Of a stretch of 64,000 nucleotides of DNA, positions 29,951-64,000 are shown piece after piece. The notes beneath the pieces are model-generated. The model had not been told where the DNA came from and made no database searches. It saw nothing but the letters and a program-made list of their open reading frames with translations. A program made the position numbers and the translations under genes. The stretch lies in the sequence record PV764938.1, one strand, 5' to 3'. The stretch's first letter is position 1, and every line of letters begins with the position of its first letter.

Positions 29951-30901
29951 ATGGATATTATGCTCGACGCTTTTGATGCCCCATCGCCTGAAGAAATCAA
30001 AGAAAAGAAAAAGCTCCGAAAGAAAGAGCTAGTCAAAGGTAAAAAGCCTATCTATGTTGATAGGGAATCTATCGGCGAGCAATCCGGCGACGTTGCCAAC
30101 CGACCTAACAAACGTATCTCTCCCAAGTTCAACATCAATAGTGGGATTGATCAGTTTGTGTCGAAAGGCTATCGCTTCGGTTCATTCTTCATTAAGAGTG
30201 TGGACACTCCAAGCTTGTGTTTTCGACTTTCGAAGCAAGAGTATGGCTCTCACGGCAAGCTTTCTAAGAAATTCAATACTGATAACAATGATCCTGGTAA
30301 TGGGGCCGATTTCCCCATCAAGGATGACACAATCTCTGATTTCGGTTTCAGAGACAAAGATAAGTTTCACATGTTCTTGCATTCTCCAGTAGAAGTGGAT
30401 GATTCCCTCGAATCACTAATTTTTGAACTGGAATTTGACTCCGATACGATGTTGTCCAAAAGCGACATTCGTATGACTATGAGTAGCCCAAGTGCCGAAG
30501 ACTTGCTTAAGGTAAGAGCTGAACGTCTCGCATCGAGAACTACTCGCCCGGACTTCGAAGCTTATCGGATTGAAGTAGAACGCTTGACGAAGCTTACTCT
30601 CCAAGCTGTGCCGCATAAAATTAAGAATCATGAACTGTCGACGCAACCTGGCATGACAGTGGATCATATCTTTTCGGTATACCACGGTTACCGTTATGGT
30701 GTCCCAGCGCACGTAATCGCACACCAATGCAATTTGCAATGGTTGGTTGGTACCGGACCAGACGGTAATTTTTCGAAGAACAAAGCAAGCTGGCAGACGC
30801 CATTTGAGCTAGTTAAGGCTTATTGCGAAGCTACAGGTGAGGACAAGACTGTCGTAGCAAGCTCCATTAACAAAGAGCTGTATTTCGACGACCAGCTTTA
30901 A
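29951..30901 (+). CDS. Putative HNH-type (homing) endonuclease
   Basis: C-terminal VDHIFSVYHGY...AHQCNLQWL...NFSK; AT-richer than neighbours; inserted between folE and queE. Confidence 0.6.
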   Translation: MDIMLDAFDAPSPEEIKEKKKLRKKELVKGKKPIYVDRESIGEQSGDVANRPNKRISPKFNINSGIDQFVSKGYRFGSFFIKSVDTPSLCFRLSKQEYGSHGKLSKKFNTDNNDPGNGADFPIKDDTISDFGFRDKDKFHMFLHSPVEVDDSLESLIFELEFDSDTMLSKSDIRMTMSSPSAEDLLKVRAERLASRTTRPDFEAYRIEVERLTKLTLQAVPHKIKNHELSTQPGMTVDHIFSVYHGYRYGVPAHVIAHQCNLQWLVGTGPDGNFSKNKASWQTPFELVKAYCEATGEDKTVVASSINKELYFDDQL

Positions 30902-30954
30902 ATTGAATTTTATCTACCTGTTCTGTTAGGATGGGTAGAAATTAGGAGTTCCAA

Positions 30955-43467: not shown

Positions 43468-44694
43468 ATGTCTACATTCCCTCTCCTCACCACTGTCGCT
43501 CCTCTTCTGGCTGCTGTGAAGGATATGCCCGAAATCGCTGTCCATCAGGATATCGAGAACGGCTATGGCTTTGTGATGTATCAGGTCGCTTTCGAGGAAA
43601 CCTTCGCGGATCCCGAACTCGCTGATACTCCTGAGGAGAGGGAACGTCGCCTTCTGGTGCGCGAAGCCCGTGGAGTCAAGTATGACTTGGCTACGCTTCG
43701 TGTCGTATCCCGCCCATACCATAAATTCTTCAACATCGGTGAGAAGCCTGAGACTCAGCCACACCTCGTGGATTGGTCTCGTCCTCATGTGATTCTGGAG
43801 AAGCTCGATGGCTCCATGTTGACTCCGCTTTGCACGGTAGATCGCCGTGTGCTTTGGATGACAAAGCGTGGTGTGACTGCGGTAGCTGGCACTGCTCAGC
43901 TATTCCTCAAGGATAATCCGCAGTATGAGAAGTTTTGCTTAGCGATGCACGACGCGGGTTGGACCCCGATTTTCGAATGGTGTACTCGTAAGCAGCGCAT
44001 TATCATCGACTACGGTGTTGATGACCGCATGATCCTCACGGGCATCCGAAACAACATTTCCGGTGAATACACTGGTTATGATGAAATGGTTGCGGTTGCT
44101 CACGATTGGAATCTGGATGTCGTACGGAAGCTTCCGTATACGGTAATGGACGTCAACAAGTTCATCGAGGATGTTCGTGGTCTCGAGGGCGAAGAAGGCT
44201 ACATCGTACGTTTCGACAACGGCGAAATGTATAAGATCAAGGGCGAATGGTACTGCCGTATCCACCGCACCTTCGACAACCTTCGCTTCGAGAAGGACGT
44301 GATTCGTCTAATCCTCTCGGGTGATCTTGACGATGCAAAGCCATTCTTGGTTCCGACGCTGATCAATGCGGTCGATCGTTTCCACAAGGATATGATCGCC
44401 GTGTTCCGCAAGTCGGCTTCCGAGTTGTATTGGTACGTGGTTGCTTCGAAGGATAATCTCAATGGATCCAAGAAGAAGTTTGCTGAACAAACAATTTCTG
44501 GTCCTTGGGAGCCCTACAAGGGTATCGCGTTCCATGCTTGGGATCGTGATATGACTGAAGAGGACATCTATGAGCGTTTGATCTCGGATATGATTTCTGC
44601 TACTGGTAGCCAGGGAACCGTTAACAAGGCGCGTTTCCTCATTGGCGGCCTTGAGTGGAAAGACTATTTGAATGACGACGGAGCAACGGATTAA
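43468..44694 (+). CDS. rnlA: RNA ligase, T4 Rnl1 family
   Basis: REARG, SRPYHKFFN, EKLDGS, FEW, EGYIVRF...YKIKG.WY. Confidence 0.88.
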   Translation: MSTFPLLTTVAPLLAAVKDMPEIAVHQDIENGYGFVMYQVAFEETFADPELADTPEERERRLLVREARGVKYDLATLRVVSRPYHKFFNIGEKPETQPHLVDWSRPHVILEKLDGSMLTPLCTVDRRVLWMTKRGVTAVAGTAQLFLKDNPQYEKFCLAMHDAGWTPIFEWCTRKQRIIIDYGVDDRMILTGIRNNISGEYTGYDEMVAVAHDWNLDVVRKLPYTVMDVNKFIEDVRGLEGEEGYIVRFDNGEMYKIKGEWYCRIHRTFDNLRFEKDVIRLILSGDLDDAKPFLVPTLINAVDRFHKDMIAVFRKSASELYWYVVASKDNLNGSKKKFAEQTISGPWEPYKGIAFHAWDRDMTEEDIYERLISDMISATGSQGTVNKARFLIGGLEWKDYLNDDGATD

Positions 44695-45529
44695 GCCAGC
44701 GATCCTACTGGAAACCCCTGAGGAAAAATCTTCAGAGGTTTTCGTAGCCAGCATCCGTCGGGTTCAAGAAGCTGCTGAACAGCTTGAAGTGCCCGTATTC
44801 TTCTCCAATCGTGATCCCATCGAGCGCGATGTTTGGGTTGATCCCGAACTAAGAGGCCGGCCTGTAATCGCTTACGGGTCGGTCCAATTCATCAGAGACA
44901 TTAAGGATCCAATATTCCCGGGAGCCTATGGCTATGCGGGCACGGATTGGCTCACTATGACCGCGCATGTTCCCAGGAAATGGTTGCTCAATTCGGATTT
45001 CATGATGACCTCATGGGGTGATCTCAAAAGGAATTTCGAATGGTGGAGCGATAAAGTCGACCCGAAAGGACTGTTCGTGCGCCCAAGTAGCGACAAGAAA
45101 GTTTTCGCGGCTCAGGTTATCCCACGAAGCGATTGGCAATTCGAGTTGAATCAGCTTGACGCGCTATCATCGGTTATGCCGGAAACCCTTTGCGTGGTCT
45201 CACCGGTTCATGCGTTTGGCGAGGAATATCGGTTTTGGATCGTTGATCGCAAGGTCGTTGGGTCCTCATATTACCCGACCTATGGTGTCACTTGGACCGA
45301 ACACAAACCCTTCCCTGACCAAAAGCTCCGTGAGTTGGCCGACAAGGTTGCCCAGCTTGAGTGGCAGCCTGATGCCTGCTATACCGTCGACCTAACATGC
45401 GACAGTAATGGAAATCCCAAGATCGTTGAAATGAATTCATTCTGCTGCTCGGGAGTCTACGACAGTGATTTCGTTACCATACTTGAAGCAGTGGTGGATC
45501 AGTCGAGTAGGGACTTTTACCCGGAGTAA
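44672..45529 (+). CDS. ATP-grasp protein (R2K clade / DUF4343-like)
   Basis: FVRPSSDKK.F, EYRFWIVDRKVV, YTVDL, IVEMNSF.CSGVY. Confidence 0.7.
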   Translation: MTTEQRIKPAILLETPEEKSSEVFVASIRRVQEAAEQLEVPVFFSNRDPIERDVWVDPELRGRPVIAYGSVQFIRDIKDPIFPGAYGYAGTDWLTMTAHVPRKWLLNSDFMMTSWGDLKRNFEWWSDKVDPKGLFVRPSSDKKVFAAQVIPRSDWQFELNQLDALSSVMPETLCVVSPVHAFGEEYRFWIVDRKVVGSSYYPTYGVTWTEHKPFPDQKLRELADKVAQLEWQPDACYTVDLTCDSNGNPKIVEMNSFCCSGVYDSDFVTILEAVVDQSSRDFYPE

Positions 45530-45970: not shown

Positions 45971-47341
45971 ATGAAACTCTATAACAGCATGAGCAAACAA
46001 CTCGAGAAGTTTGTCCCAGCGGACGAACGTCGGGTGACCATGTATGTTTGCGGCCCCACAGTATACCAGGCCCCACATATCGGCAATCTTCGGCCGGCTG
46101 TGGTCTTCGATACGCTTTATCGATACCTGCGCGACAAATACGGGGCTGACCACGTCGTTTATGCGAGCAATTTCACGGACATCGACGATAAAATCATCAA
46201 AAAGGCCAACGACAATCGGACGTCCATCGACAATATCACGGAAGAAGCCATCGGCCATTACCAGCGTGATCTGCTCAGCCTGAACGTGTTGGGTCCGAGT
46301 GATCGTCCATATGCGACCAAGTATGTGGATGATATGATCCGGATGATCGATCGTCTCCAGGAAAACCATTACGCTTATGAGGTGAATGGGAACGTTTGGT
46401 TCTCCGTCGCCGATAGCAAGCACGTGAGTTTCCAACCGGATCGCGATAACGCAGGACTCGACGAAACATTTACGGCGGACAAAAAGGATCCCAGAGATTT
46501 TGCGCTGTGGAAAGCAGCAAAGCCAGGCGAACCCTTCTGGGAAAGCCCTTGGGGTCCAGGTCGTCCAGGCTGGCACATTGAATGCTCAGCTATGATTCGG
46601 GCAACTCTCGGTGACACCATCGACATTCACGGTGGTGGGTCCGATTTGATGTTCCCACATCATGAGGCCGAAAACGCTCAAAGCTTTGCCGTTACTGGAA
46701 AGCCCTTGGCCAACTATTGGCTTCACAATGGCATGATGAACATTGGGATGGCCAAAATCTCCAAAAGCCTCGGCAATTCCATCTCCATGCACGATCTCAA
46801 TCAGAGATTCCCAGGAGAATCCATTCGGTTGTTCCTGATGATGACACATTATCGGAGCACGATGAATTTTGATCATGGCTTGATCAGTGACGCTCATGCG
46901 CTGATGAATAAGTTGTATCGTGTGCTCTACAAGTACCGGGATGAACTGCTCGACCCCGCCGAAGTCGAACATGATGTGTTTGTGGTGAAGGCGTTCGAGC
47001 AGGACATGAATACTGCGGAAGTCATAACACGGCTTCAGCAGTTGGCCACAAAGGCCCTAAAGGAGTCCCATCCGTCGATTCGCCAGAAGCTGTTGACACA
47101 GTTGATCAAGGGCGGACAACTCCTGGGTGTACTCAACTACACACCAGAGGATTGGTTTCATATTGGTGTTAACCATGTTGAAATTGAGGAGTTGATTTCG
47201 GCACGGAACTTTGCTAGGGCGGCAAAGGATTGGCAACTTGCGGATATCTATCGCAAGTCGCTAAACGACAAAGGTGTCCATCTGGACGATCTCGATGGTG
47301 AGACGTTCTGGCGGACAATCAAAGGCGACGTTAGGCAATAG
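45971..47341 (+). CDS. cysS: Cysteinyl-tRNA synthetase
   Basis: MYVCGPTVY, HIGN, FTDIDDKII, DFALWK, GRPGWHIECSAM, HGGGSDLMFPHHE, KISKSLGN; AGGAG RBS. Confidence 0.95.
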   Translation: MKLYNSMSKQLEKFVPADERRVTMYVCGPTVYQAPHIGNLRPAVVFDTLYRYLRDKYGADHVVYASNFTDIDDKIIKKANDNRTSIDNITEEAIGHYQRDLLSLNVLGPSDRPYATKYVDDMIRMIDRLQENHYAYEVNGNVWFSVADSKHVSFQPDRDNAGLDETFTADKKDPRDFALWKAAKPGEPFWESPWGPGRPGWHIECSAMIRATLGDTIDIHGGGSDLMFPHHEAENAQSFAVTGKPLANYWLHNGMMNIGMAKISKSLGNSISMHDLNQRFPGESIRLFLMMTHYRSTMNFDHGLISDAHALMNKLYRVLYKYRDELLDPAEVEHDVFVVKAFEQDMNTAEVITRLQQLATKALKESHPSIRQKLLTQLIKGGQLLGVLNYTPEDWFHIGVNHVEIEELISARNFARAAKDWQLADIYRKSLNDKGVHLDDLDGETFWRTIKGDVRQ

Positions 47342-47355
47342 GAAGGAAAAACGTT

Positions 47356-47952
47356 ATGGAATTTATCGCAGGCTTGTCCTTTTTCTGGGTAGGCATCGTG
47401 TTCACGATTGCTGCTCTCGCAACTCTCATCTCCATCGGCACCAACAGCTACTGGTGGGCTTTCGGCATCGTCATCGGCACGATCGCATTCTCCCAGGGCA
47501 CCACTGACTACGGCATTCTCGATTTCGTCGCACGGAACTGGTACGGCACGCTGATCAGCACGGCCGTTTACGTTGCACTGGGTCTCGGCTGGGCTACGTT
47601 CGCATGGTTCCTGCACTTGACCAAGATCAAGGCCAAGTACCAAGAAGTACGTGAAAACTTGCTGCCGCAGTTCCTCGCATCCAAGAACGTCCAGGAACTC
47701 ACCGCCGATCTTCACGACGAGTTCCGCAAGTTCATCTACTCGAACGCCGGCACGGTTCTTCCGAAGGAACAGCTCGCAGTCAACAAGAGCGTCATGGTCG
47801 GTCAGGTTATCCTGTGGCCGTTCAAGCTCGGCGCGTTCGTCCTCGGTGACGCACTCAAGTACATCGTCGACGCATTCCTCGGACTGTTCGGCGGCTTCTT
47901 CAAGCGCATCCAGAAGTTCGTATTCCGTAACTTCCCGGAACTGCAGGCTTAA
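47356..47952 (+). CDS. Membrane protein (3-4 TM segments)
   Basis: Long hydrophobic N-terminal segments; ILWPF motif. Confidence 0.7.
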   Translation: MEFIAGLSFFWVGIVFTIAALATLISIGTNSYWWAFGIVIGTIAFSQGTTDYGILDFVARNWYGTLISTAVYVALGLGWATFAWFLHLTKIKAKYQEVRENLLPQFLASKNVQELTADLHDEFRKFIYSNAGTVLPKEQLAVNKSVMVGQVILWPFKLGAFVLGDALKYIVDAFLGLFGGFFKRIQKFVFRNFPELQA

Positions 47953-47982
47953 TCGGTCGGGGGCTTTGGCCCCCACCACTCT

Positions 47983-48058
47983 CGCGGTTTAGCTCAGTTG
48001 GTAGAGCAGCGATCTCTAAAATCGTTTGTCACGGGTTCGAGCCCCGTAACCGCGGCCA
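47983..48058 (+). tRNA. Amber-suppressor tRNA, anticodon CUA (tRNA-Trp-like scaffold)
   Basis: 76-nt cloverleaf: acceptor CGCGGTT/AACCGCG, D arm GCTC/GAGC, anticodon stem GCGAT/ATCGT with loop CT-CTA-AA (CTA at 48016-48018), T arm ACGGG-TTCGAGC-CCCGT, G73, encoded CCA. Confidence 0.93.
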
Positions 48059-48389: not shown

Positions 48390-49142
48390 ATGGAACCGCT
48401 ATTCGACATTAACGGCTTGATGTTTTGGAGCCAGAAGGAAATTGCTCTGCGTGAGCGTTTCAAGGCCCAGATCGCCGAAGGAGTAGCAGAATTCCTCCAC
48501 GGTCAGAATCCCATGTTCCTGCAGAACTTCCTGCAGGTGGAAGCTCCGCTGCTTACACCACGTTCCGCATTGAATCCCAACTATACGGACGAGGATATTT
48601 GGGCACAGGAAACGCTGGAAGTCAGCGGCTCCCATGAGCTTGCGCTGCGGCCGGAAACTACTCCAGGTTCCTACACGTATGCGGTGCACCTGTTGAACTC
48701 CCACAGCGCCCACAAGCCTCCGATGGTCGTATGGCAGGCCGGTAAGAGCTTCCGGCGTGAAAACGAACAACCGTCCAAGCACATGCGGTTGAAGGAATTC
48801 TACCAACAGGAGTTCCAGTGCGTTTATGCGGCTGATACCATGAACGATTACCAGGAAGCCTCGCTGGAACCCATGCGCAAACTGCTTGGTGATATCATCG
48901 GCTTGCCCACGCGCATCGTAGAGTCCGATCGTTTGCCCTCCTATAGCAAGCGCACCATGGACATTGAAGTCGACAACGGCGACAAGTGGATGGAAGTCTG
49001 CTCGATTAGCCTGCGCACGGACTTCCCTGAAAAGTTTAAGTTCGTCCACAAGGGCGTTCAGAAGGAGAAGGATCTCCTCGTGCTTGAGATCGCCGTTGGT
49101 CTCGATCGCGTCGTATACAATTACCTGCAGAGGACGAAATAA
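48390..49142 (+). CDS. Class II aminoacyl-tRNA synthetase catalytic core, GlyRS(alpha2)-like, lacking an anticodon-binding domain
   Basis: Motif 1 VEAPLLTP, LRPETT, motif 2 QAGKSFRRE...RLKEFYQQE, MEVCSIS.R.DF, motif 3 EIAVGLDR; ends 10 aa after motif 3. Confidence 0.8.
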   Translation: MEPLFDINGLMFWSQKEIALRERFKAQIAEGVAEFLHGQNPMFLQNFLQVEAPLLTPRSALNPNYTDEDIWAQETLEVSGSHELALRPETTPGSYTYAVHLLNSHSAHKPPMVVWQAGKSFRRENEQPSKHMRLKEFYQQEFQCVYAADTMNDYQEASLEPMRKLLGDIIGLPTRIVESDRLPSYSKRTMDIEVDNGDKWMEVCSISLRTDFPEKFKFVHKGVQKEKDLLVLEIAVGLDRVVYNYLQRTK

Positions 49143-52423: not shown

Positions 52424-52490
52424 CAAATAAACCAGCATAGCTTAAATAGAGAACACTGGTCATGGTGATCAGCTTTTAGGAGAAAACGAA

Positions 52491-52985
52491 ATGAAGTATT
52501 AGGTTGAAGAAAAGCTGCGTGTTCGGGCCTACAACGGTCTGAACGAGACTTCCCTCCCTGCGGCTACGCCCGCATATTTCGGCGACGACGAGTCGTTTGA
52601 AGAAGCCAGCAATAAGCTTCGCATTTACAGCATCATTCGGGGCGATCTCGAAATGACCGCTGGTAAGCTTGCCTCCCAGGCATGCCACGCTGCGAAGAAC
52701 TGCGCTATCATCGCCCAGCAGTACGAGCCTCAGTTGCTCGAGACTTATCAGGGCCCTGATTTCATCGGTACTCAAATCATCCTCAAGGCGAAGAATGAAG
52801 CCGCAATCCTGAAGGCCTACGAAGCCGCTAAGGAAGCAAACCTCATCACCTCGCTCATTGTTGATGAAAAGCATGTCATGCTCCCGCACTTCGACGGCAA
52901 CCCCATCATTACCGCTCTCGGTATTGGTCCTTGCACTCGTGAACAGGCGCATCACATCACCAAGCGGTTTGAGGCTGTACGATGA
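52491..52985 (+). CDS. pth2: Peptidyl-tRNA hydrolase type 2 with an in-frame amber codon at position 4 (readthrough gene or pseudogene)
   Basis: AGGAG-N8-ATG AAG TAT TAG GTT..., in frame with IYSIIRGDLEMTAGKLASQACHA, IILKA, LIVDE, TALGIGP; the track ORF at 52653 starts inside the conserved first motif. Confidence 0.8.
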
Positions 52986-55869: not shown

Positions 55870-56883
55870 TTAGCTTTCGTGAAACACTTTAAGCCAGCAT
55901 TCGCTCATTGTGCGGTACTCTGGCTGCAAATAGTTCTGAGGGATCGGACCCAAGCTGCACTTGTTGAAGTGTTGGCAGCTTAGACAGCCATAGTCGGAAA
56001 GCCAGCGTTCTTCCATCGCTTGGAATGTGATACCCGGATCATCGAAGATCTTACCCTCTAGTGTGGTATCGCAGAATCCGGAAATCTTATGACCGGCATT
56101 CTCGGTATGCTGATATAGGCTATCGTTTACAGGCTGTCGCAGGAGGCCAGAGATAGGATTGGAGCGTGGGTACTTGCGGGCTAGTAGCTGGAACATCGCA
56201 AGCAAGTCCTGGTCCGTAGGAGCGTTTACGGCTTTGTTCCGTTCGAGCTGATAGAAATCAAACGCACAGAAATACTTCTCGTAAAGGGAATCGAAATATG
56301 CGGTATCGCCGGATAGGAACTTTCGAATGTTCGGACGAGTCATCGTGATGTTGATGGCGCGAATATCACTGCCGTAGATTTCAACGTTGCGGGCAAATAT
56401 CTCGTGATTCTCACGGCTGAAGCGGCTGACCGGATCGTAGGAGACCATGAGGTTGGCCTCACAAACATCGGTCTCCAAACGCGCAAATAGATCCTTAACT
56501 CGATCGGTTTTCGAATGAACTAGATTGGATCCCCAGGCAATGTCAACGCGGATGCCTACGCAATTGGCGAAATCCTCGACAATGCGGGCAAAGTCGTAAT
56601 AGTCCTCGAACACGCTATCCGGAACAGCATCCGAAAAGAGTTCTCCGCCCTGCACATTGAGAGTGATTTGAGTTTTTCCGGCGTCGTTGAATCGGTTGAT
56701 GGATTCTCGCACATCGGCGAGTCTATCCATAATCGTATCCATGCCGGACTTGTCATCGTGATCCTGTGGACAAAAGCTACAAGCCAAGTTACAGTGTTCA
56801 AACAGGACGACAGCTATTTCCCCATGTGTGCTTCGTTTGTGCCGCATGAGGTGGTCAATTAATTGCGATGCCATATTGGTCAT
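55870..56883 (-). CDS. Radical SAM protein with C-terminal Cys cluster (SPASM/twitch-like)
   Basis: CNLACSFC, QGGELF, CLSCQHFNKC...EC; GTAAATA on the minus strand at 56909-56915. Confidence 0.85.
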   Translation of the reverse strand: MTNMASQLIDHLMRHKRSTHGEIAVVLFEHCNLACSFCPQDHDDKSGMDTIMDRLADVRESINRFNDAGKTQITLNVQGGELFSDAVPDSVFEDYYDFARIVEDFANCVGIRVDIAWGSNLVHSKTDRVKDLFARLETDVCEANLMVSYDPVSRFSRENHEIFARNVEIYGSDIRAINITMTRPNIRKFLSGDTAYFDSLYEKYFCAFDFYQLERNKAVNAPTDQDLLAMFQLLARKYPRSNPISGLLRQPVNDSLYQHTENAGHKISGFCDTTLEGKIFDDPGITFQAMEERWLSDYGCLSCQHFNKCSLGPIPQNYLQPEYRTMSECWLKVFHES

Positions 56884-57019
56884 TTTCTGGCTAAATAAAC
56901 AGCGTACATATTTACGCGAGCGAGGAATGGATTGTCAACCAGTTCTACTAAAATATTGACGTTTCAGTTCCTGATTTACTAAAATGCAACATAACGAAAA
57001 TCCTAATAGGAGAAACTCT

Positions 57020-57262
57020 ATGACTGCAGAAGCAGCACCTCAGATCACGATCAACGACCTACAGAATGTTGTCAAGGTTATTGATGCAGCGGCTGAACGT
57101 GGCGCCTTTAAGGGCAACGAACTGACGGCTGTTGGAGCCGTTCGCGATAAGGTAGCAAACTTCCTCGCGGCAATCCCAACGGATGAAAACGCAGAAACCC
57201 CTGCTGAAGAAGCTGAAGCCGCTTCCGAAGCAAAGCCTACTCGTCGCAAGTCGAAGGCATAA
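57020..57262 (+). CDS. Conserved phage hypothetical protein
   Basis: AGGAG RBS; INDLQNVVKVIDAAAERGAFKGNEL. Confidence 0.75.
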   Translation: MTAEAAPQITINDLQNVVKVIDAAAERGAFKGNELTAVGAVRDKVANFLAAIPTDENAETPAEEAEAASEAKPTRRKSKA

Positions 57263-57271
57263 GGAGAAACA

Positions 57272-57907
57272 ATGGCTGAAATTACCAAACACGTAGGTAA
57301 GACTTCGAATACGGATCGTCGTATTGTTGTCGTCTACATGCAGATTCCAGGTCGTGAAGATCACGCACTGGTTGTTGACACGGATGCTCTACCGTCCCGT
57401 TTCCACGATGACCTTATGGCTGTGGTTCAGGGCGAAGGCCAGCACGTTACGGTTCTTGCAGACCTTCTGGGTCGTCGCATCATGCCGTATTCGGGTGCTG
57501 ACATGCTGAGCACGCTTCATTCGGCTAATGCTTTGCAGGCAGTTCCTGTTGCCAACATCATCATGCTGCCGCAGCCGAACCAGGGTATTCCACTGGCCAC
57601 AATTCTTCAGCACATGGGCAAGACCGCTCCTGTTGAAGAGGTCAAGGAAACTGTGTATCGCGATAACCGAATCGTTGAGAACCAGGAAATCGACCGCAAC
57701 AATCAGCAGTATCAGATTGCCGCAAACATTCTCGCAGAAGCTGAACTTCTTGCTGAGGAATCCACTCGCAAGCGCGAACAGGCTTACCAGATGTATCCGG
57801 CCCTGCGTCCTGTAGCTAAGGCTCCAATCGATACAAAGATTGAAGAGACTTCGGCACCAGTGCAAGCTGTTAAGGCGAAGCGCACAACAAAGAAGAACAC
57901 AGCCTAA
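57272..57907 (+). CDS. Conserved phage hypothetical protein
   Basis: AAGGAG RBS; KHVGK...VVVY...ALVVDTDALP. Confidence 0.75.
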   Translation: MAEITKHVGKTSNTDRRIVVVYMQIPGREDHALVVDTDALPSRFHDDLMAVVQGEGQHVTVLADLLGRRIMPYSGADMLSTLHSANALQAVPVANIIMLPQPNQGIPLATILQHMGKTAPVEEVKETVYRDNRIVENQEIDRNNQQYQIAANILAEAELLAEESTRKREQAYQMYPALRPVAKAPIDTKIEETSAPVQAVKAKRTTKKNTA

Positions 57908-58173
57908 TGAGTCAACATCTCGAGGAAATCATTGAGAAAATCCGCCTGGAGCGTCAGCGTCAATTTGACCTCCCAGGTTCCGAGTGGGACTCTCAAAATA
58001 GTCCTGGAGATTGGATTGCACTAGTCAACCACTACGTGAGCAAAGAAGTACGAGCCAAGGGCATCGCTCCAATGGGTGATGAATTTGAAGATTCTTTGAT
58101 CAAAGCGGCTGCGGTGATCATCGCTGCGCTTGAGCATATCCCGGATATGTCTGAAAGAGAACAGCTGATTTAA
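57907..58173 (+). CDS. MazG-like all-helical protein (putative nucleotide pyrophosphatase)
   Basis: ERQRQ...W...DW...EDSLIKAAAVIIAALE. Confidence 0.45.
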   Translation: MSQHLEEIIEKIRLERQRQFDLPGSEWDSQNSPGDWIALVNHYVSKEVRAKGIAPMGDEFEDSLIKAAAVIIAALEHIPDMSEREQLI

Positions 58174-58234
58174 ATTGACGCTCATTAACCCTGTGTGTTC
58201 TAATACCTGGAGTAGTAATATTCCAGGTATTTTT

Positions 58235-58855
58235 ATGACTATTAGCCGTGGAAAAGGGCGTGGTACCCACATCACAAAACTTCCCAGTGTAAAGCGAGTG
58301 ATGCCGCAAATCATGGCCCACAATATAGTAGGTGTTTCGCCTATGGCCGCACCGAAGGGAAACATCTTTCAAATGAGAAAAAGATATATAGGCGCAAAAG
58401 GCCCAGTAGGTATTAAAGGCCCAAAAGGAACTTCAGGAATGGCATATTCCAGCTACAATCGACGCGATCGTCTCCGCGGTCGTGGAAATATTCCGTATCA
58501 CAATCCGCTCCTTACGCAGGACCGTGTGTATCAGGTCTTCCGCTACGATATCGAAAACCAATCCGGTTATGGTATCTCTGAGGATTGTGACGAGTCCGAC
58601 TACAAGTGGGAACCAGACGAAGAAGATTTCGTCAAGGATGAAGGTTACCAATACGAGCTTGAACTCACAAACGTCGATACGCTCGAGGGTGAGCATCGCA
58701 AGATGATTCGTGCGTACCAGGATGCAATCGAGCATATGGGCGCAATGGCTCTGCTATGGCACGACCTCATGATGGATCTTGAAGCAAATCCACACCTGAA
58801 GGATCAGTTCGACAAATTCCAGATGCTGCGCAAGCTTTCCGGAGGTACGATGTGA
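58235..58855 (+). CDS. Hypothetical protein with a T4 gp23-like N-terminal motif
   Basis: VKRVMPQIMAHNIVGVSPMAAPKGNIFQMRKRY. Confidence 0.55.
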   Translation: MTISRGKGRGTHITKLPSVKRVMPQIMAHNIVGVSPMAAPKGNIFQMRKRYIGAKGPVGIKGPKGTSGMAYSSYNRRDRLRGRGNIPYHNPLLTQDRVYQVFRYDIENQSGYGISEDCDESDYKWEPDEEDFVKDEGYQYELELTNVDTLEGEHRKMIRAYQDAIEHMGAMALLWHDLMMDLEANPHLKDQFDKFQMLRKLSGGTM

Positions 58856-59127
58856 AGGATCACGAGTATTTGAGTTCAAACAGCGATCGCCGTTACCTGT
58901 GTGAGGAATACGCTAGGGATCAATGGGGTCCTGTTGTGGCCAAAGCCAATGCAAGCGCCGAGTTCTTCAAGAATGAAGCAAAACGGCTTGAGGCCGAAAA
59001 CGCAAAGTTGGCTCTCGAAGCCTCTCATGGTCGCGCTTTCCTCAAGATGATGGCGGCGATCAAAGAGAACCCAGCAGCACAGACATTCTGGGACAAAACA
59101 ATGGCTATGATGAGGCTCGTCGAGTAA
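58852..59127 (+). CDS. Hypothetical coiled-coil protein
   Basis: GGAGGT RBS; AIKENPAAQTFWDKTMAMMRL. Confidence 0.6.
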   Translation: MKDHEYLSSNSDRRYLCEEYARDQWGPVVAKANASAEFFKNEAKRLEAENAKLALEASHGRAFLKMMAAIKENPAAQTFWDKTMAMMRLVE

Positions 59128-59462
59128 TGGAAGACTACGTTAGAACACCCGAAGAGCAGATTGAGATTCTCGAAGCAAAACTCGAATACGCAGAGCGCAC
59201 CATTACTCGGCTGCAAGAGCGTGATGCGATGTATCAGGATCTTATCAAGCAATCCAATTTGGCCGATCTGCAATCGGATATGTCCGAAGAAGGTCGAGCT
59301 AAACTCATAGCAAAAGTAAGGGATACCTATGTCAAAGGACAACACATGGCAGTCCTCGAAGGAGCCATCAAAGACAACGAACTCGTCGCCGACGCCTGGA
59401 AAAAATTCATGGTTGCTCTCCGACTATGTGGATTCGACGACCCAAATCGAAGCAATGAGTGA
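59127..59462 (+). CDS. Hypothetical coiled-coil protein
   Basis: TAATG coupling; AIKDNELVADAWKKFMVALRL. Confidence 0.6.
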   Translation: MEDYVRTPEEQIEILEAKLEYAERTITRLQERDAMYQDLIKQSNLADLQSDMSEEGRAKLIAKVRDTYVKGQHMAVLEGAIKDNELVADAWKKFMVALRLCGFDDPNRSNE

Positions 59463-59844
59463 GTCGCAAATCTTGAAATACACGGCTAATATCCCTCCTA
59501 CGAATACGTTTCCCGGTGACGTTTGGGTAGACACGAGTTCCGGAAACGTATTGATGTCCACGGGCACTGGGATAACCAACGTCGGTACGTCCGTAGTAAC
59601 CGGCGGTATTGGCGCACATTCCCACACGATTGTGAATAACAATAGCATTTCGTGGGCAAGCATCAGCAATCTGGAACCCACCTATAGCTTCAAAGCGGGT
59701 GACCGTCGCGTCAGTATGACGGAGAAGGAAATCAGTAAGATCCTCACGGACAAAGAAGAACTGGACAAACTTTGTATTGAGCAGCCATCGGTACAAGAAG
59801 CGTTTACGCGCTTGCAGACCCTGATCAAGCTTTATCGTGAATAG
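59455..59844 (+). CDS. Hypothetical protein
   Basis: Overlaps the previous gene; GDVWVD motif; ends TAG TAA. Confidence 0.55.
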   Translation: MSESQILKYTANIPPTNTFPGDVWVDTSSGNVLMSTGTGITNVGTSVVTGGIGAHSHTIVNNNSISWASISNLEPTYSFKAGDRRVSMTEKEISKILTDKEELDKLCIEQPSVQEAFTRLQTLIKLYRE

Positions 59845-59902
59845 TAAACGGTAAATACTTGGTTAGGGAAAGCCTAACGTTCCTTTTTGTTAGGAGAATG
59901 CC

Positions 59903-60172
59903 ATGGCAAAGAAAAAGTATGACTACATCGATCGTTTCCTTGAGGAAGCCGATACTTACATTGTTCCGGAAGAATTCATCTCCGCAGCATGTATCACATA
60001 CTTGAATGGCGACGAGCAATATATCAGCTTCGAAGAAGCTTCCGACATCATTGCCAACGGTTCCCTGAAGGCTCAGGGCATCAAGCAGATCCGCGCGATC
60101 ATCGATATGGAAGTTGTAAAGGAAACTGTTATCGAGCTTTCTGAACACATTTTGAGCCACGCAGACTTCTAA
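59903..60172 (+). CDS. Hypothetical acidic protein
   Basis: AGGAG RBS; TAAATA upstream (about 59851). Confidence 0.65.
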   Translation: MAKKKYDYIDRFLEEADTYIVPEEFISAACITYLNGDEQYISFEEASDIIANGSLKAQGIKQIRAIIDMEVVKETVIELSEHILSHADF

Positions 60173-60206
60173 TCCGGGGCTCCACAAGTTTATTCTGTTT
60201 GGCACA

Positions 60207-60887
60207 ATGGTAGCAATACACGAACTCACTATTGGTATGGATGACCTGATTGCCGAGTTTCAAATTGACTCGGACGGGCTAATTGAAAAAGGTTTTGCGG
60301 TCGGAGATCGCCGTGACCCTCGAGTTCGCAAGCTTATCAACTATTTGGCAATTTACGCGCCAGACTCCCATGCACACCAACATTATCCTTTTGAAACCAT
60401 CAGCTTTCATCCAGCTGATGGTCTCACCTATCCTAATCCAACTATGGTCGTCGTCTATAAGATGGCACCACCTCCGGAGATCAAAGCACAATATGGAATC
60501 CCTGAGGGAAATTTCCTTCCAGGATTCGCCGTAAAGTATGATCTGGTTACCGGCACGAGCAAAGTCAAAATGGCTGACTTAGACTTCTCCAAATACAAGA
60601 TGCCGAAGCTTCCGTGGTTCACACGAGTCGGTTGGGATTTCGGTGTCGGAGTTCACTTCAGCAGCAATCCGAACGAGCAGGCGTTGGATCTCGCAGACTT
60701 CTACGTGGCTAACCCATATCGCTGGTTCATGCGTCGGGCCTTCGGGGATCGTTATCCCGAATACGCCGAGGATTTCAAGCCGGTGATTCGCGCATATGGA
60801 ATCACGACCCGAAACGGTGAAGTGGTCAAGCTAAAGCGTTATATCTACTGGAAAGACAAAGAGCTCAAGCATCTTGATCGAGCATGA
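60207..60887 (+). CDS. Hypothetical protein
   Basis: Long ORF converging on the minus-strand cluster. Confidence 0.6.
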   Translation: MVAIHELTIGMDDLIAEFQIDSDGLIEKGFAVGDRRDPRVRKLINYLAIYAPDSHAHQHYPFETISFHPADGLTYPNPTMVVVYKMAPPPEIKAQYGIPEGNFLPGFAVKYDLVTGTSKVKMADLDFSKYKMPKLPWFTRVGWDFGVGVHFSSNPNEQALDLADFYVANPYRWFMRRAFGDRYPEYAEDFKPVIRAYGITTRNGEVVKLKRYIYWKDKELKHLDRA

Positions 60888-61290
60888 ACTCCGATACAAA
60901 GTAGGATTCCACATCGGGAATCTCACCCAACGTTAGATCAAAATCCCAACCAAATACCTCTAGAATTGCATCGTATACGTGGGATGCTTCCGAGTAGCGT
61001 GTGAAGTATGGATCGTTTCCATGAAGCAGATCCGGATCGTCAAGTACCTCGAGTGGATTCTCCCCGAAGTGGTCACGAAGCAGACGTGAATAGACAATCG
61101 CAACAAAGTAGGATTTCGCCGGATAAACGACCTTCTCGGGAACCCATCCACTCATGTAGCGGCAAACAGTTTCGATGATTGGTGTTGCCCAAGTTTGTTC
61201 CATCATCTCGATATCATCGGGACCATACTCATCAGGATGAGAACGATTCAAACGATGATAGAGTTCCTGCCTAATCTTCCATTCTTTCAT
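60865..61290 (-). CDS. Radical-SAM-cluster partner protein of unknown function
   Basis: MKEWKIRQELYH start overlaps the rSAM stop; YPAKSYFVAIVY, LDDPDLL.GNDPYF. Confidence 0.65.
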   Translation of the reverse strand: MKEWKIRQELYHRLNRSHPDEYGPDDIEMMEQTWATPIIETVCRYMSGWVPEKVVYPAKSYFVAIVYSRLLRDHFGENPLEVLDDPDLLHGNDPYFTRYSEASHVYDAILEVFGWDFDLTLGEIPDVESYFVSEFMLDQDA

Positions 61291-62191
61291 CGCGGTACCA
61301 ATCCAAAAGACCTTTGAAACCATTGCAGGAATTGTCCATGTTGCGGACTTCCCGAAGGTGTTCACTCAAACATTTACCAAAATATTCACAGCTTGAACAG
61401 GTGCCATTCGCAGAGACTCGTGCTTTCTCACGCTTGGTCCAATCCCTGTATTGCCAAAGATCATCAAGCTCCAAGAAGAACTCGTTATCGTCTGCGTCAA
61501 ACTCCAAGACACCAAACTTACCCGAAGGCGTGATATAGATGTGGTCGTCCGAGAAACTATTCGAGAGGCCCAAAAGAGCATCCTCGACGAGGAATTCGTT
61601 AACAAATTCAAAGCGTTTCTTCGGATACTCGATCCACTTCTTGACGAACTCTTCAAAGTCCTTGAAGGTTACATCATCGGCGTTGGCCTGATTCGTGCTG
61701 TAGGGCTTGATCTCCACGGACTTCACATTCGTGAAAAGATTCAACTCGGATATCATCAAGCCGATATCCTTTTGCAGAATTCCCTTGCTTGCGAGGATCA
61801 GCACGGAGAAATGCTTTTCGAGTGCCAGCATATTGTTTCGGACACTCGTCGATGCCTGCCGCACGTCGAAGTCGTAGGAAACCGAAAGCTCAATATCGTC
61901 GTCTAGGAAGCCCTTGTGAATCCGAGACAGATTAGTGATGACATTGATGGGACCCGAATAATGCTTGCGGATCACAGCTTTCAGTTCGTACCACTTTTGC
62001 TCGGACATGAGTCCGACTTCACCACCATATAGATCAAGTGCGGTGATCAGTTGAAACTCGTTGAGTTCCTTTAGTCGAGTATCCAAGATATCCAAGCGAA
62101 TACTCTTGGGATCACCAAGCTGCTCGTTGGTCAGATAGCAGAAGCTGCAACGGAAGTTACAGAAGTACGTGGGGTTCAAGCTTACTTTCAT
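61271..62191 (-). CDS. Radical SAM protein with C-terminal Cys cluster
   Basis: CNFRCSFC, LYGGEV, CSSCEYFGKC...SCNG; ATGA coupling. Confidence 0.88.
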   Translation of the reverse strand: MKVSLNPTYFCNFRCSFCYLTNEQLGDPKSIRLDILDTRLKELNEFQLITALDLYGGEVGLMSEQKWYELKAVIRKHYSGPINVITNLSRIHKGFLDDDIELSVSYDFDVRQASTSVRNNMLALEKHFSVLILASKGILQKDIGLMISELNLFTNVKSVEIKPYSTNQANADDVTFKDFEEFVKKWIEYPKKRFEFVNEFLVEDALLGLSNSFSDDHIYITPSGKFGVLEFDADDNEFFLELDDLWQYRDWTKREKARVSANGTCSSCEYFGKCLSEHLREVRNMDNSCNGFKGLLDWYRDERMED

Positions 62192-63273
62192 GCGAGTCCA
62201 TTGACCTCCAGGATGTCCGTAGCAAGCGTTTTCATCGTCCGGCAGTGCTGGTCTACCAGATTCGCTTCCTTCAAGTCCTTGACTGTTTTACGGCATCCAT
62301 TGCAAATTGCAAACATTGGACAGCTATAGCACTCGTGCTTCATGGAATCCAAATTAATATCGTCCTGCAGCGGTGTGAAAAACTCACCCTCGAGGACTTC
62401 CTTTTGGAAATCGATTGGCTTGTCACGGTCATCACCGAAAGCACCGCAACTGTAATAGTCGCCACCGGGCTGAAGCGTACGAATACCTTCGTCGCACTTG
62501 CGGTTTTGTGGGCAGATTGTCGGATGATCCTTGAGACGTTTGGTCATCTGCTTCGTGTTGAATTCCCAGGGCGTCAATCCGGCTTTGTGAATGTCCACGT
62601 AAATCTTGTAGATCTTCGACAAGATATATGGATTGCCGGATTGTCCCATTTTATGTCCGGTGCGTGGATCCACAATGATGTCACCGGAAGCCATCGCATA
62701 ATTGAGTTTACACTCGACGCCATGCTTCTGTCCGTCTTCGTCAATATAGGCGGGTTTGCCGTCGGACATTTCGCGAGCCAGCTCAACGTTCTTGATCGCA
62801 AGGTGTTCGTTCTCGTCGGTCACCACGCTGATAAAGTCGGGACGATATCCAACATGCTCAAGCATTGCGTTGGAGACTTCCCATAGATCTTGCTCCGTGA
62901 ACAGTGACAAGTCGCCCTTGACACGTCCGGGACCGTAATTGAAGCTAGTTGCGACACCCATACGTGGATGTTGAAACAGCTTGGTCCACTTCTTCGGGTT
63001 TTTCAAGAACGGCCACAAATTGCTTGTGAAGCTGATGCTTGCACGATACTCGTGTTTGTCTAGGTGATCGATGAGTTGCCAGTAATACTGGGGCGGAACC
63101 ATCAGAGGATCACCGCCGTTTACGATGATCGTACTCGTATGAGGGAACCGTTTGAGGAACTGATAAATGCGCTCAAGATCCAACGTCTGCGCGGAATGAG
63201 CAGCGATTTTTGTGCTAGAGCAGAACGTGCATTTGAAATTGCAGAGCTCAGTGGGTTTAATAATCAGGTCCAT
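62188..63273 (-). CDS. Radical SAM/SPASM-domain protein
   Basis: GAGG RBS; MDLIIKPTELCNFKCTFC, NGGDPL, CPQNRKC, YYSCG, CYSCPMFAICNGC...HC. Confidence 0.9.
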   Translation of the reverse strand: MDLIIKPTELCNFKCTFCSSTKIAAHSAQTLDLERIYQFLKRFPHTSTIIVNGGDPLMVPPQYYWQLIDHLDKHEYRASISFTSNLWPFLKNPKKWTKLFQHPRMGVATSFNYGPGRVKGDLSLFTEQDLWEVSNAMLEHVGYRPDFISVVTDENEHLAIKNVELAREMSDGKPAYIDEDGQKHGVECKLNYAMASGDIIVDPRTGHKMGQSGNPYILSKIYKIYVDIHKAGLTPWEFNTKQMTKRLKDHPTICPQNRKCDEGIRTLQPGGDYYSCGAFGDDRDKPIDFQKEVLEGEFFTPLQDDINLDSMKHECYSCPMFAICNGCRKTVKDLKEANLVDQHCRTMKTLATDILEVNGLA

Positions 63274-63280
63274 TTTCGCC

Positions 63281-64000
63281 TCAGTAGGACTCGTACGTTT
63301 CCAACTTAAACATGCTCTCGATACGCAGGAGGTCATCGTAGCCGGGATAACCGGCTTCACCAATCTTCGTCTTGAGCTTTGCCACTGGGATACGGCCGCA
63401 ACAGGATAACGCATATACGGGATCAAAATCCGGATCAAGGTATTTTAGCGGGCCGATATGATCGTAGAAGTATTGAATAAGCTCGGCTTCAACTCCACCG
63501 AGATCCTGCCCGAAGGGGATCATGAATCCGCTGCCCAGCATAGTCGGAGGACCGAAACGCTTGAGCTTGACAGGCTCATAGGCGTTCTCGACTGCACCGA
63601 ATCGCAAGATATTGTGCCACGGCATATCCGCGTAAGTGAGTTCCGCATACACAGTTCCCGGTACGATATCCATCGTCGTAAACTGTAGCCACGACTCATC
63701 AAACTTGCGAGCAAAGTGCGGATCCGGCACATGGATGATTTGCCCGAAAGATGAGCCCTCGTTGCCGTTGTTGAACTCATTGTCCTGCACGTTATCCAAG
63801 AAGAACATTACGCGCTTGAGTGAGTCCATGATCGCCTTGACTTTATAGGCGCGATCGAGTGTTCCGAGTTTTCCCTCGCTCAGCAGCTTGTTGAGGTCAC
63901 GAAGCAATTTTGTTCCATGAGCCGGTTTCAGTTTACCGAAGGGCAGCTTTTGGAACTCGTGATTGATCTCTGCGAGTTGATTTCGGATCGTAGACCACAG
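63281..64000 (-). CDS. Hypothetical protein in the radical SAM operon (5' end beyond the window)
   Basis: The frame stays open to position 64000 (LWSTIRNQ...LLRDLNKLL...). Confidence 0.6.
   Translation of the reverse strand: MWSTIRNQLAEINHEFQKLPFGKLKPAHGTKLLRDLNKLLSEGKLGTLDRAYKVKAIMDSLKRVMFFLDNVQDNEFNNGNEGSSFGQIIHVPDPHFARKFDESWLQFTTMDIVPGTVYAELTYADMPWHNILRFGAVENAYEPVKLKRFGPPTMLGSGFMIPFGQDLGGVEAELIQYFYDHIGPLKYLDPDFDPVYALSCCGRIPVAKLKTKIGEAGYPGYDDLLRIESMFKLETYESY

Follow-up and report, generated by a model that had tools for sequence, protein, structure and literature searches.

Results

A conserved tRNA with a CUA anticodon lies upstream of pth2 in phage Phosso

We examined a window of 64,000 nucleotides from sequence record PV764938.1, which derives from the 469-kb Sinorhizobium jumbo phage Phosso. 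The portion of this window that concerns us carries a tRNA gene flanked by two small ORFs of unknown function, two genes related to aminoacyl-tRNA synthetases, and a downstream gene for a peptidyl-tRNA hydrolase (pth2). The relevant features, numbered by window position, are as follows.

45971-47341 (+), cysS (full-length CysRS), which ends in TAG and serves as a syntenic anchor upstream of the tRNA
47356-47952 (+), 198-aa ORF of unknown function directly upstream of the tRNA
47959-47974 (+), 6-bp G+C hairpin (GGGGGC-UUUG-GCCCCC) with no U tract, between the stop codon of the upstream ORF and the tRNA
47983-48058 (+), 76-nt tRNA with anticodon CUA, G73, encoded CCA, and anticodon loop CUCUAAA
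48069-48386 (+), 105-aa ORF of unknown function between the tRNA and the GlyRS-like core, whose ATG lies 10 nt after the 3' end of the tRNA
48390-49142 (+), 250-aa class II aaRS catalytic core of GlyRS type without an anticodon-binding domain (GenBank: 'serine-tRNA synthetase')
52478-52482 (+), Shine-Dalgarno AGGAG, 8 nt upstream of the pth2 start codon
52491-52502 (+), pth2 start ATG, then AAG TAT, then an in-frame amber codon TAG (52500-52502, codon 4)
52503-52985 (+), pth2 coding sequence after the TAG (160 codons plus TGA stop), of which GenBank annotates only 52653-52985 (110 aa)

To validate the tRNA, which had first been noticed in a sequence-only reading of the window, we searched the window with ARAGORN and recovered exactly one tRNA, at 47983-48058 (+), with anticodon CTA. 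The Rfam model RF00005 matches 47983-48055 with 67.1 bits (E = 2e-12, against a gathering score of 29) and no non-canonical pair. The sequence shows an acceptor stem CGCGGUU/AACCGCG (C1-G72), G73, an encoded CCA, the anticodon loop CUCUAAA, a 5-nt variable loop, GG in the D loop, and a GUUCGAG T loop. Across nine syntenic orthologs, 15 of 21 cloverleaf pairs show compensatory double changes and none is broken, which is far beyond chance. The CUA anticodon is present in 14 of 14 syntenic orthologs. Thus, the possibility that relatives carry CCA at this position, which would have pointed to a point mutation or sequencing error, is not borne out. G73 is likewise invariant (Phosso and all 13 other syntenic orthologs), whereas the C1-G72 pair is not conserved and is mostly G1-C72 in the orthologs.

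Some details of the sequence-only reading required correction. The tRNA was placed simply between cysS and a GlyRS-like gene, but the 198-aa and 105-aa ORFs sit between these three genes. It is indeed the only tRNA in the window. However, it is one of 62 in the genome, which lacks a tRNA-Tyr and includes a second CUA tRNA at record positions 446731-446806 that has two U.U mismatches in its acceptor stem.

The cysS assignment is supported by a TIGR00435 match of 450 bits, and the order cysS, ~1.1 kb, tRNA(CUA) is kept in six relatives. Neither small ORF has a Pfam, NCBIfam, or PHROG hit. A search for relatives of the 198-aa ORF found none, although a 197-aa ORF sits at the same position in one relative, here designated L124 (UViG_3300020156_000001). 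A promoter and terminator scan around the tRNA gave nothing above shuffled controls, and the hairpin upstream of the tRNA was not called as a terminator, but it is possibly a processing or stability element.

Phosso shows no global recoding of TAG

We next asked whether the tRNA reflects use of an alternative genetic code. TAG ends 37 of 569 called genes (6.5%), including the five that the sequence-only reading had listed (window 26348, 45908, 47341, 59844, and 61271 minus), and structural genes are open in code 11. Read-through extensions of TAG-terminated genes are not enriched for coding potential, being coding-like in 1 of 37 cases compared with 7.1% for TAA and 5.0% for TGA. Similarly, internal TAGs flanked by coding sequence on both sides (10 of 7300) show no excess over TAA (19 of 8849) or TGA (12 of 17880), and most such hits are antisense shadows. 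A TAG junction at record position 380509 between two same-frame ORFs is not a fusion because the upstream ORF is a complete standalone PHROG family. The 1.3-kb unannotated gap after the second CUA tRNA has no coding potential in any frame even when TAG is read as sense, and yielded no Rfam hit. No release factor is present among the 735 annotated features, as judged from the annotation rather than from an HMM search. Note that these statistics use our own heuristic gene calls, which number 569 compared with about 660 annotated CDS. Nevertheless, the data agree with the earlier proposal that there is no global recoding.

An early in-frame amber codon interrupts pth2

The sequence-only reading proposed that the tRNA is a dedicated read-through factor for a few amber-gated genes such as pth2. 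Therefore, we searched the genome for genes with this organization. Only 2 of 569 genes have a coding-like, start-less leader of 20 codons or more, and both lie behind a TAG (2 of 9 TAG leaders versus 0 of 49 TAA/TGA leaders). One is pth2. The other (record 232168-233031, minus strand) was rejected because its leader overlaps an opposite-strand gene and looks non-protein-like. A scan for the architecture SD, ATG, at most 12 codons, stop, and at least 20 start-less codons returned pth2 as the only protein-like hit in 469 kb, and 16 of 18 TAG hits in 883 kb of related loci are pth2. These findings support the proposal, but for one gene rather than for a few.

In Phosso pth2, the Shine-Dalgarno and ATG AAG TAT TAG are followed by 50 in-frame codons that contain no ATG, GTG, or TTG and that run into the Pth2 fold. 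The portion after the TAG matches Pfam PF01981 with 72.9 bits over profile positions 3-113 of 115, compared with 60.6 bits over positions 13-113 for the annotated ORF, such that coverage extends 10 profile positions upstream of the annotated Met. The leader scores as coding (15.2). Against a relative at dS of about 0.7-1.1, dN/dS is 0.19 for the leader and 0.086 for the domain, and the only indel between ATG and TAG is 3 nt. The CTG and ATT codons of Phosso are not conserved, so no alternative start exists. The stop codon therefore separates two segments of one ORF in the same frame, both of which are under coding selection. An AlphaFold model of the post-gate piece from a 10-sequence alignment was too poor to use (mean pLDDT 44.6).

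We also considered whether pth2 is a decaying pseudogene and the CUA tRNA a mutated or non-functional copy of a sense tRNA, which would make their association coincidental. The annotation of only a 110-aa piece, the untyped tRNA in GenBank, and the mismatches in the second CUA tRNA could be read in this way. However, the selection and tRNA covariation data, together with retention of the TAG in orthologs, effectively refute this reading, and we regard it as highly improbable.

Gate codon and suppressor anticodon covary between lineages

An in-frame TAG at codon 4-9 is present in all ~21 distinct orthologs found in huge phages, even though the N-terminal peptides are unrelated (MKY, MTYN, MSY, MLTNSFL, MKTEFL, MNVHLPFR, MDFT, MSEFT, and MTM). 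An SD-like AAAGGA or AGGAG lies upstream of the ATG in the orthologs. No ortholog with a sense codon in place of the gate was found in viral or metagenome collections. In 14 of 16 loci with at least 2.5 kb of flank, a CUA tRNA, always with G73, lies 1.9-4.9 kb upstream of the gate. Two gated phages (L124 and a second, designated L217) show no CUA tRNA within the 6-10 kb in view. Note that the IMG/VR and metagenome loci partly overlap and include near-identical strains.

Agrobacterium phage Atu_ph07 is an exception. Its pth2 (gp256, 72% identical) has an ATG, five codons, and then TGA, and the only non-canonical tRNA of that phage is, as published, a UCA suppressor (PMC6102473), which we located and confirmed at 60 bits. 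This tRNA has a different body (A73), so two unrelated suppressors each match the gate of their own phage. The covariation, however, rests on a single TGA/UCA lineage.

These observations bear on an alternative in which the early stop is a prfB-like sensor of host release-factor activity or of peptidyl-tRNA drop-off, read through at a basal level by host near-cognate tRNAs, whereas the phage tRNA has another main job such as corrupting termination of host UAG-ending genes. This is suggested by the position of the stop at codon 4-9, where short nascent chains may terminate poorly and drop off, by the two gated phages with no CUA tRNA nearby, and by phages XacN1 and RsoM2USA, which carry CUA suppressors although their Pth2 genes have ordinary starts and are ungated paralogs. 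In contrast, the covariation of stop and anticodon and the tight physical linkage argue against it, as does the absence of a conserved read-through context or stimulatory RNA structure (0 of 22 pairs covary, z = -0.64). UAG is also probably the least leaky stop in bacteria. We consider this alternative unlikely.

A second alternative is that Phosso is in transition toward genome-wide TAG recoding, along the path of stop-codon depletion, suppressor acquisition, and spread of in-frame stops described by Borges et al. (bioRxiv 10.1101/2021.08.26.457843), in which case pth2 is merely the first gene to acquire a TAG and the gate has no regulatory meaning. TAG is the rarest stop in Phosso, and those authors describe standard-code phages that have acquired suppressors. 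However, the single gate is stable across a deep clade (CysRS only 46-50% identical, Pth2 56-86%) without spreading to any other gene in our scans, always sits at the extreme N-terminus in a non-conserved peptide context, and is matched in Atu_ph07 by the same one-gene pattern with a different stop codon. We find this explanation very unlikely.

Identity of the tRNA and of the neighboring synthetase-like gene

ARAGORN labels the tRNA as tRNA-Pyl, and a CUA tRNA in Sinorhizobium phage AP-J-162 was interpreted in this way (PMC11242549). However, the Phosso tRNA has a canonical 5-bp anticodon stem, a 5-nt variable loop, G18G19 in the D loop AGUUGGUA, and T loop UUCGAGC, none of which are Pyl-like. 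No pylBCD genes are annotated anywhere in the genome. The neighboring aaRS core gives only a weak PylS_Cterm hit (E = 3e-4, 20 bits, against a cut-off of 178 bits), and GlyRS is its best match. Therefore, we view tRNA-Pyl, or another carrier of a non-canonical amino acid, as a remote possibility.

A CUCCAAA loop and G73 had been taken in the sequence-only reading as tRNA-Trp features, with the E. coli su7 suppressor, charged largely with Gln, as a precedent. The D arm and anticodon arm in Phosso are identical to those of 46 bona fide phage tRNA-Trp genes, but this appearance is not diagnostic because the same D arm and anticodon stem occur in bacterial Phe (66), Lys (34), Trp (9), Thr (9), and Asn (2) tRNAs. 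The nearest paralogs are only 70-72% identical across several isotypes, BLAST hits are annotated Trp, Ile, Met, Thr, Asn, or Lys, and the A1-U72 pair is replaced by C-G or G-C. The analogy with su7 also depends on a GlnRS, which S. meliloti probably lacks. The inserted residue is unresolved, with Trp the leading candidate at less than even odds. Another amino acid, or charging via the neighboring GlyRS-like core, comes next, followed by Gln and then Lys.

The GlyRS-like core matches NCBIfam NF003211 (E = 8.5e-17) over profile positions 161-340 of 454, but at 61 bits against a cut-off of 312, and aligns to the GlyRS structure PDB 8sld (E = 3e-10). The class II catalytic motifs 2 and 3 with the Gly-pocket glutamates are present, and RPET, KSFRxE, KEFxQxEF, and LEIAVGLDR are conserved in 26 orthologs. 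In eight relatives, the CUA tRNA lies 53-1875 nt upstream. The protein is a possible but unproven charging enzyme. It could be speculated that the cysS-tRNA(CUA)-GlyRS-like-pth2 neighborhood is a self-contained, natural 'orthogonal' expression module, in which this anticodon-blind core is the dedicated synthetase that recognizes G73 and the tRNA body rather than the anticodon. The phage would then make its own aaRS/suppressor pair to switch on a stop-gated gene independently of host synthetases, as a natural counterpart of the engineered pairs used for genetic code expansion. The data do not exclude this idea, but we consider it doubtful.

Discussion

Our preferred explanation, which we consider likely although suppression is inferred in the absence of expression, charging, or proteomic data, is that the tRNA is a functional, phage-encoded amber suppressor whose conserved target is the phage's own pth2 gene, about 4.5 kb downstream. 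In this model, ribosomes start at the SD-preceded ATG (52491), translate Lys-Tyr, and meet UAG at codon 4. Without the suppressor, host RF1 releases a tripeptide and no enzyme is made. When charged tRNA(CUA) is present, it outcompetes RF1, inserts an amino acid, and lets the ribosome continue through the 50-codon leader into the Pth2 domain, giving a 164-residue peptidyl-tRNA hydrolase. The stop codon would therefore act as a translational gate that ties Pth2 synthesis to the presence of the suppressor, rather than as a recoded sense codon specifying a particular residue. The reason for gating Pth2 is likewise a matter of inference. Our preferred guess is that Pth2 output is matched to suppressor activity, because read-through and very short ORFs both generate peptidyl-tRNA drop-off that Pth must clear.

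If this model is correct, the arrangement is a minimal, stable, one-gene form of phage stop-codon recoding that links suppression to peptidyl-tRNA recycling. Several annotations also merit correction. The pth2 gene in Phosso and gp256 in Atu_ph07 are truncated at an internal Met, the 'serine-tRNA synthetase' is a GlyRS-type core, and the 'tRNA-Pyl' or 'tRNA-Undet' is an amber suppressor by its anticodon.

Comparison with known systems

Suppressor tRNAs were already known from standard-code jumbo phages, including Atu_ph07 (UCA; PMC6102473), XacN1 (two CUA; PMC5852040), RsoM2USA (CUA; PMC8504454), and AP-J-162 (CUA; PMC11242549), which likewise combine large tRNA sets with one or two stop-anticodon tRNAs in genomes that otherwise use code 11. 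Atu_ph07 is a true relative, and AP-J-162 shares the host genus, about 66 tRNAs, and the lack of tRNA-Tyr. None of these papers identified a target. The Atu_ph07 and RsoM2USA reports refer to 'several potential genes', and the AP-J-162 tRNA was interpreted in terms of pyrrolysine. The XacN1 authors read through all 18 annotated amber stops and found nothing, because a 3-8 codon mini-ORF is never annotated as a gene. What is new here is a specific, conserved target, although the ungated Pth2 genes of XacN1 and RsoM2USA mean that it does not explain every jumbo-phage suppressor.

In crAss-like, Lak, and other gut phages that use code 15 or code 4 (Borges et al., bioRxiv 10.1101/2021.08.26.457843; Peters et al., PMC9523058), a phage-encoded suppressor tRNA also lets genes with in-frame stops be translated in a standard-code host, and this has been proposed as a post-transcriptional regulatory device. 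In those phages, tens to hundreds of late, structural, and lysis genes carry many in-frame stops at conserved Gln or Trp positions, whereas here there is one gene and one stop at the extreme N-terminus in a non-conserved context, and structural genes are untouched.

The E. coli su7 (supU) suppressor, apparently derived from tRNA-Trp, is comparable in that the loop CUCUAAA differs from the tRNA-Trp loop CUCCAAA by C35U and in that G73 is present. However, A1-U72 is replaced by C1-G72 or G1-C72 in the phage tRNAs, most orthologs instead have an A31-U39 stem that is one base from tRNA-Lys(CUU), and the phage gene is naturally selected rather than a laboratory mutant. The early in-frame UGA of prfB (RF2) offers another parallel, in which a conserved, deliberately placed stop appears to make synthesis of a translation factor depend on how the stop is handled. 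prfB seems to rely on a +1 frameshift at codon 26 and to sense its own product, whereas in pth2 the downstream ORF is in the same frame and the matching factor is a tRNA encoded nearby. Finally, synthetic suppressor-tRNA gene switches, such as a feedforward 'leak dampener' (PMC7969014), combine an amber codon early in a target gene with a separately expressed suppressor tRNA to give AND-type control of expression. Those circuits were engineered in E. coli, whereas the arrangement in Phosso appears to be a natural, evolutionarily conserved version.

Identification of the CUA tRNA

The candidate amber suppressor was first re-examined with ARAGORN, which finds one tRNA in the window, with anticodon CTA, and with the Rfam tRNA model, which matches positions 47983-48055 at 67.1 bits (E = 2e-12) with every stem pair canonical. 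The sequence reads CGCGGUU-UA-GCUC-AGUUGGUA-GAGC-A-GCGAU-CUCUAAA-AUCGU-UUGUC-ACGGG-UUCGAGC-CCCGU-AACCGCG-G-CCA, and therefore carries C1-G72, G73, an encoded CCA, and the anticodon loop CUCUAAA, exactly as described in the initial sequence-only reading. The five genes that this reading had listed as terminating in TAG were also found to be correct. The features of the window that are relevant to this work are as follows.

47983-48058, + strand: tRNA with anticodon CUA
28414-32073: FolE-like GTP cyclohydrolase I and a QueE-like gene
43468-45529: T4 Rnl1-type RNA ligase (PF09511, E = 6e-33) and an R2K-clade ATP-grasp protein, just upstream of cysS
45971-47341: full-length cysS, immediately upstream of the suppressor
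48390-49142: 250-aa GlyRS-type class II catalytic core
52653-52985: pth2 as annotated (110 aa)
55870-64000, minus strand: block of genes with three radical SAM proteins

The window belongs to Sinorhizobium phage Phosso (PV764938.1), whose circular genome is 469,473 bp and whose host is S. meliloti NRRL L-50. Window position 1 corresponds to record position 124001. In GenBank, the tRNA is labeled 'tRNA-OTHER / tRNA-Undet(nnn)' and the 250-aa downstream gene 'serine-tRNA synthetase'. The complete genome has 62 ARAGORN tRNAs covering 19 amino acids, including two tRNA-Trp(CCA) genes, but no tRNA-Tyr. The same gap is reported for the Sinorhizobium jumbo phage AP-J-162 (PMC11242549), although several related huge phages do carry tRNA-Tyr arrays. 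An unusually long (93 nt) tRNA-Ile(TAT) call at record 383344-383436, with its anticodon at position 32, may contain an insertion or intron or may be a mis-call. The genome also encodes IF-1, IF-3, RRF, S21, peptide deformylase, CysRS, ThrRS, a HisRS fragment, and three Pth2 paralogs.

A second CUA tRNA resides outside the window, at record 446731-446806. This copy scores 65 bits, and its D and anticodon arms are nearly identical to those of the window tRNA, but it has A73 and two adjacent U.U mismatches (3-70 and 4-69) in the acceptor stem. Its 5′ acceptor strand is identical to that of the tRNA of one relative (L026). Several other phages also carry tandem CUA tRNAs with different discriminators (G, A, or U). 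The 1.3-kb stretch right after the second Phosso CUA tRNA (record 446807-448102) has no annotated gene, no coding potential in any frame, even when TAG is read as sense, and no Rfam match.

The neighborhood of the window tRNA looks like a tRNA repair and maintenance island, given the RNA ligase and ATP-grasp protein just upstream of cysS, and Atu_ph07 (an Agrobacterium phage discussed below) likewise has an RnlA-type ligase about 2 kb upstream of its own gated pth2 gene. The FolE-like and QueE-like genes, together with a 6-pyruvoyl-tetrahydropterin synthase elsewhere in the genome, suggest a 7-deazaguanine pathway for DNA or tRNA modification. The minus-strand radical SAM block continues beyond the window with an oxidoreductase and a fourth radical SAM protein (record 179870-192395).

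TAG is not globally recoded in Phosso

The genes for capsid, portal, sheath, terminase, and a 13.7-kb virion protein are all open in code 11. Among 569 genes that we called on the basis of codon usage, the stop codons are TAA (353), TGA (179), and TAG (37). Although these gene-level statistics rest on heuristic gene calls, in-frame extensions beyond TAG stops are no more coding-like than those beyond the other two stops (1 of 37, against 7.1% for TAA and 5.0% for TGA). Likewise, TAG codons with coding-like sequence on both sides are not in excess (10 of 7300, against 19 of 8849 for TAA and 12 of 17880 for TGA). The cysS gene itself ends in TAG, where read-through would add 16 codons before the next stop, which is also TAG.

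An early amber codon interrupts pth2

Upstream of the annotated pth2 gene, the sequence reads AGGAG-N8-ATG AAG TAT TAG, followed by 50 in-frame codons with no ATG, GTG, or TTG before the annotated Met. The Pfam PTH2 profile matches the post-TAG piece at 72.9 bits over profile positions 3-113, whereas the annotated piece gives only 60.6 bits over positions 13-113, so the annotated start cuts into the domain. An AlphaFold model of the post-gate piece was unusable (pLDDT 44.6). Across all 569 genes, only two have a start-less leader of at least 20 codons with a coding score above 4, and both follow a TAG (2 of 9 TAG leaders, against 0 of 49 TAA or TGA leaders). The second of these overlaps an opposite-strand gene and was rejected. 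We also scanned the genome for the architecture proposed in the sequence-only reading (SD, ATG, at most 12 codons, stop, and at least 20 start-less codons in an ORF of at least 90), and pth2 was returned as the only protein-like hit.

To determine whether this stop codon is conserved, we searched for orthologs by using only the piece after the stop. A 480-kb IMG/VR contig has an 86% identical ortholog with the sequence AGGAG-N8-ATG ACT TAC AAC TAG GTT, wherein the only indel between the ATG and the TAG is 3 nt. At a dS of about 0.7-1.1, the leader has a dN/dS of 0.19 and the domain 0.086. The CTG and ATT codons in the Phosso leader are not conserved, so no alternative start exists. Eight more huge-phage contigs have orthologs (69-77% identical) that begin M-[L/I]-[T/I/S]-N-S-F-L-TAG-E-A, in which the short peptide is kept through synonymous changes and 33 start-less codons follow the TAG. 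Further viral and metagenome orthologs, down to 56% identity, all have the early TAG but with yet other peptides (MSY, MTM, MNVHLPFR, MDFT, MSEFT, MKTEFL). In all, about 21 distinct TAG-gated orthologs were found, and none has a sense codon at that position, although some of the metagenome and IMG/VR loci are the same or near-identical phages. Only distant Pth2 paralogs (28-36% identity) start normally, including those of XacN1 and RsoM2USA. No conserved RNA structure flanks the gate.

The CUA tRNA is conserved and linked to the pth2 gate

The GlyRS-like neighbor of the tRNA has 34 orthologous loci in IMG/VR huge phages. In 8 of these loci, the only tRNA within about 6 kb on either side is a CUA tRNA located 53-1875 nt upstream of the core, and six loci also keep cysS about 1.1 kb upstream of the tRNA. 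The nine syntenic tRNAs share an invariant D stem, the loop CUCUAAA, and G73, and 15 of 21 pairs covary whereas none is broken. When the metagenome loci are included, 14 of 16 gated loci with at least 2.5 kb of upstream sequence have a CUA tRNA 1.9-4.9 kb upstream of the gate, always with G73. Thus, the possibility raised by the sequence-only reading as a refutation, that relatives would carry CCA at this position, is not borne out. However, two gated contigs (L124 and L217) show no CUA tRNA within the stretch of sequence examined.

The stop codon and the suppressor anticodon covary

Agrobacterium phage Atu_ph07 (490 kb, cultured) has a 72% identical pth2 ortholog, gp256, which is annotated from an internal Met as a 110-aa 'hypothetical protein' (NC_042013 198552-198884, or positions 7067-7399 of the sequence stretch denoted L210). 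Upstream it reads AAAGG-N8-ATG ATT GGC GAA CAC TTT TGA ATT, wherein codon 7 is opal rather than amber. The real ORF starts at L210 6950 and contains the in-frame TGA at L210 6968-6970. The published tRNA inventory of Atu_ph07 comprises 32 canonical tRNAs plus one suppressor with anticodon UCA, whose targets are described only as 'several potential genes' (PMC6102473 and its supplement). We located this tRNA at positions 18713-18787 of a second sequence stretch, L214. It scores 60 bits, has the loop CUUCAAA and A73, and its body is unrelated to the CUA family. Two non-orthologous suppressors therefore each match the stop codon in their own phage's pth2, although this covariation rests on one TGA lineage. 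Taken together with the variable peptide context, this finding indicates that what matters is suppression itself, not which residue is inserted.

Candidates for charging the suppressor

We next considered which enzyme might charge the tRNA, but the evidence leaves this unresolved. The D arm and anticodon arm of the Phosso tRNA are identical to those of 46 ordinary phage tRNA-Trp(CCA) genes in IMG/VR, and G73 is probably the bacterial Trp discriminator as well. However, when the anticodon loop was left free, the same D arm and stem were found to occur in bacterial Phe (66), Lys (34), Trp (9), Thr (9), and Asn (2) tRNAs. Moreover, most orthologs have an A31-U39 stem and a GGGUC variable loop, one base away from tRNA-Lys(CUU). 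Pairs 1-72, 2-71, and 3-70 all vary, which argues against enzymes that read the acceptor stem. The precedent of su7, which points to Gln, needs a GlnRS that S. meliloti may well lack.

The neighboring 250-aa protein is a GlyRS-type class II core, rather than the annotated 'serine-tRNA synthetase', with catalytic motifs conserved in 26 orthologs and with no anticodon-binding domain, which makes it an attractive candidate. Against that, the core also occurs in 25 loci without the tRNA, where it often sits inside tRNA arrays next to tRNA-Gly genes, and it is absent from the syntenic site in L124. Furthermore, the main text of the Atu_ph07 paper never mentions a synthetase (PMC6102473). One of the contigs with such an array (L035; IMGVR_UViG_3300029955_000013) also has an ARAGORN-called tmRNA gene at 1854-2268 (tag peptide ending ...APCAIAA), about 4 kb upstream of its GlyRS-like core and the tRNA array, and AP-J-162 is likewise reported to encode a tmRNA. 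A second case of a truncated class II aaRS piece beside a tRNA is present in Phosso at record 3746-4686, where a 196-aa HisRS fragment that matches only the N-terminal third of the hisS/HisZ profiles lies about 275 nt downstream of tRNA-His(GTG).

A model for suppressor-gated pth2 expression and its relation to known systems

The conserved CUA tRNA, the conserved early in-frame stop in pth2, the translated and start-less leader, the linkage between the two genes, and the covariation of codon and anticodon lead us to favor, with fair confidence, the pairing of this tRNA with the pth2 gate. In the absence of expression or proteomic data, it is nevertheless only inferred that this tRNA suppresses the gate in vivo, and that the purpose is to couple Pth2 synthesis to suppressor availability. 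A possible reason for such coupling is that read-through and mini-ORF drop-off both create peptidyl-tRNA that Pth2 must recycle.

CUA or UCA suppressors have already been published for jumbo phages that use the standard code. These include two CUA tRNAs in XacN1 and the suppressors of RsoM2USA (PMC8504454) and Atu_ph07 (PMC6102473). In AP-J-162, a Sinorhizobium jumbo phage with 66 tRNA genes, the CUA tRNA was read as tRNA-Pyl (PMC11242549). Wholesale TAG or TGA recoding of late genes with phage suppressors is also known from crAss-like, Lak, and other gut phages. We found no paper linking a suppressor to pth2. What is new in the present case is therefore a stable, single-gene, N-terminal stop-codon gate with a co-evolving, physically linked suppressor tRNA.
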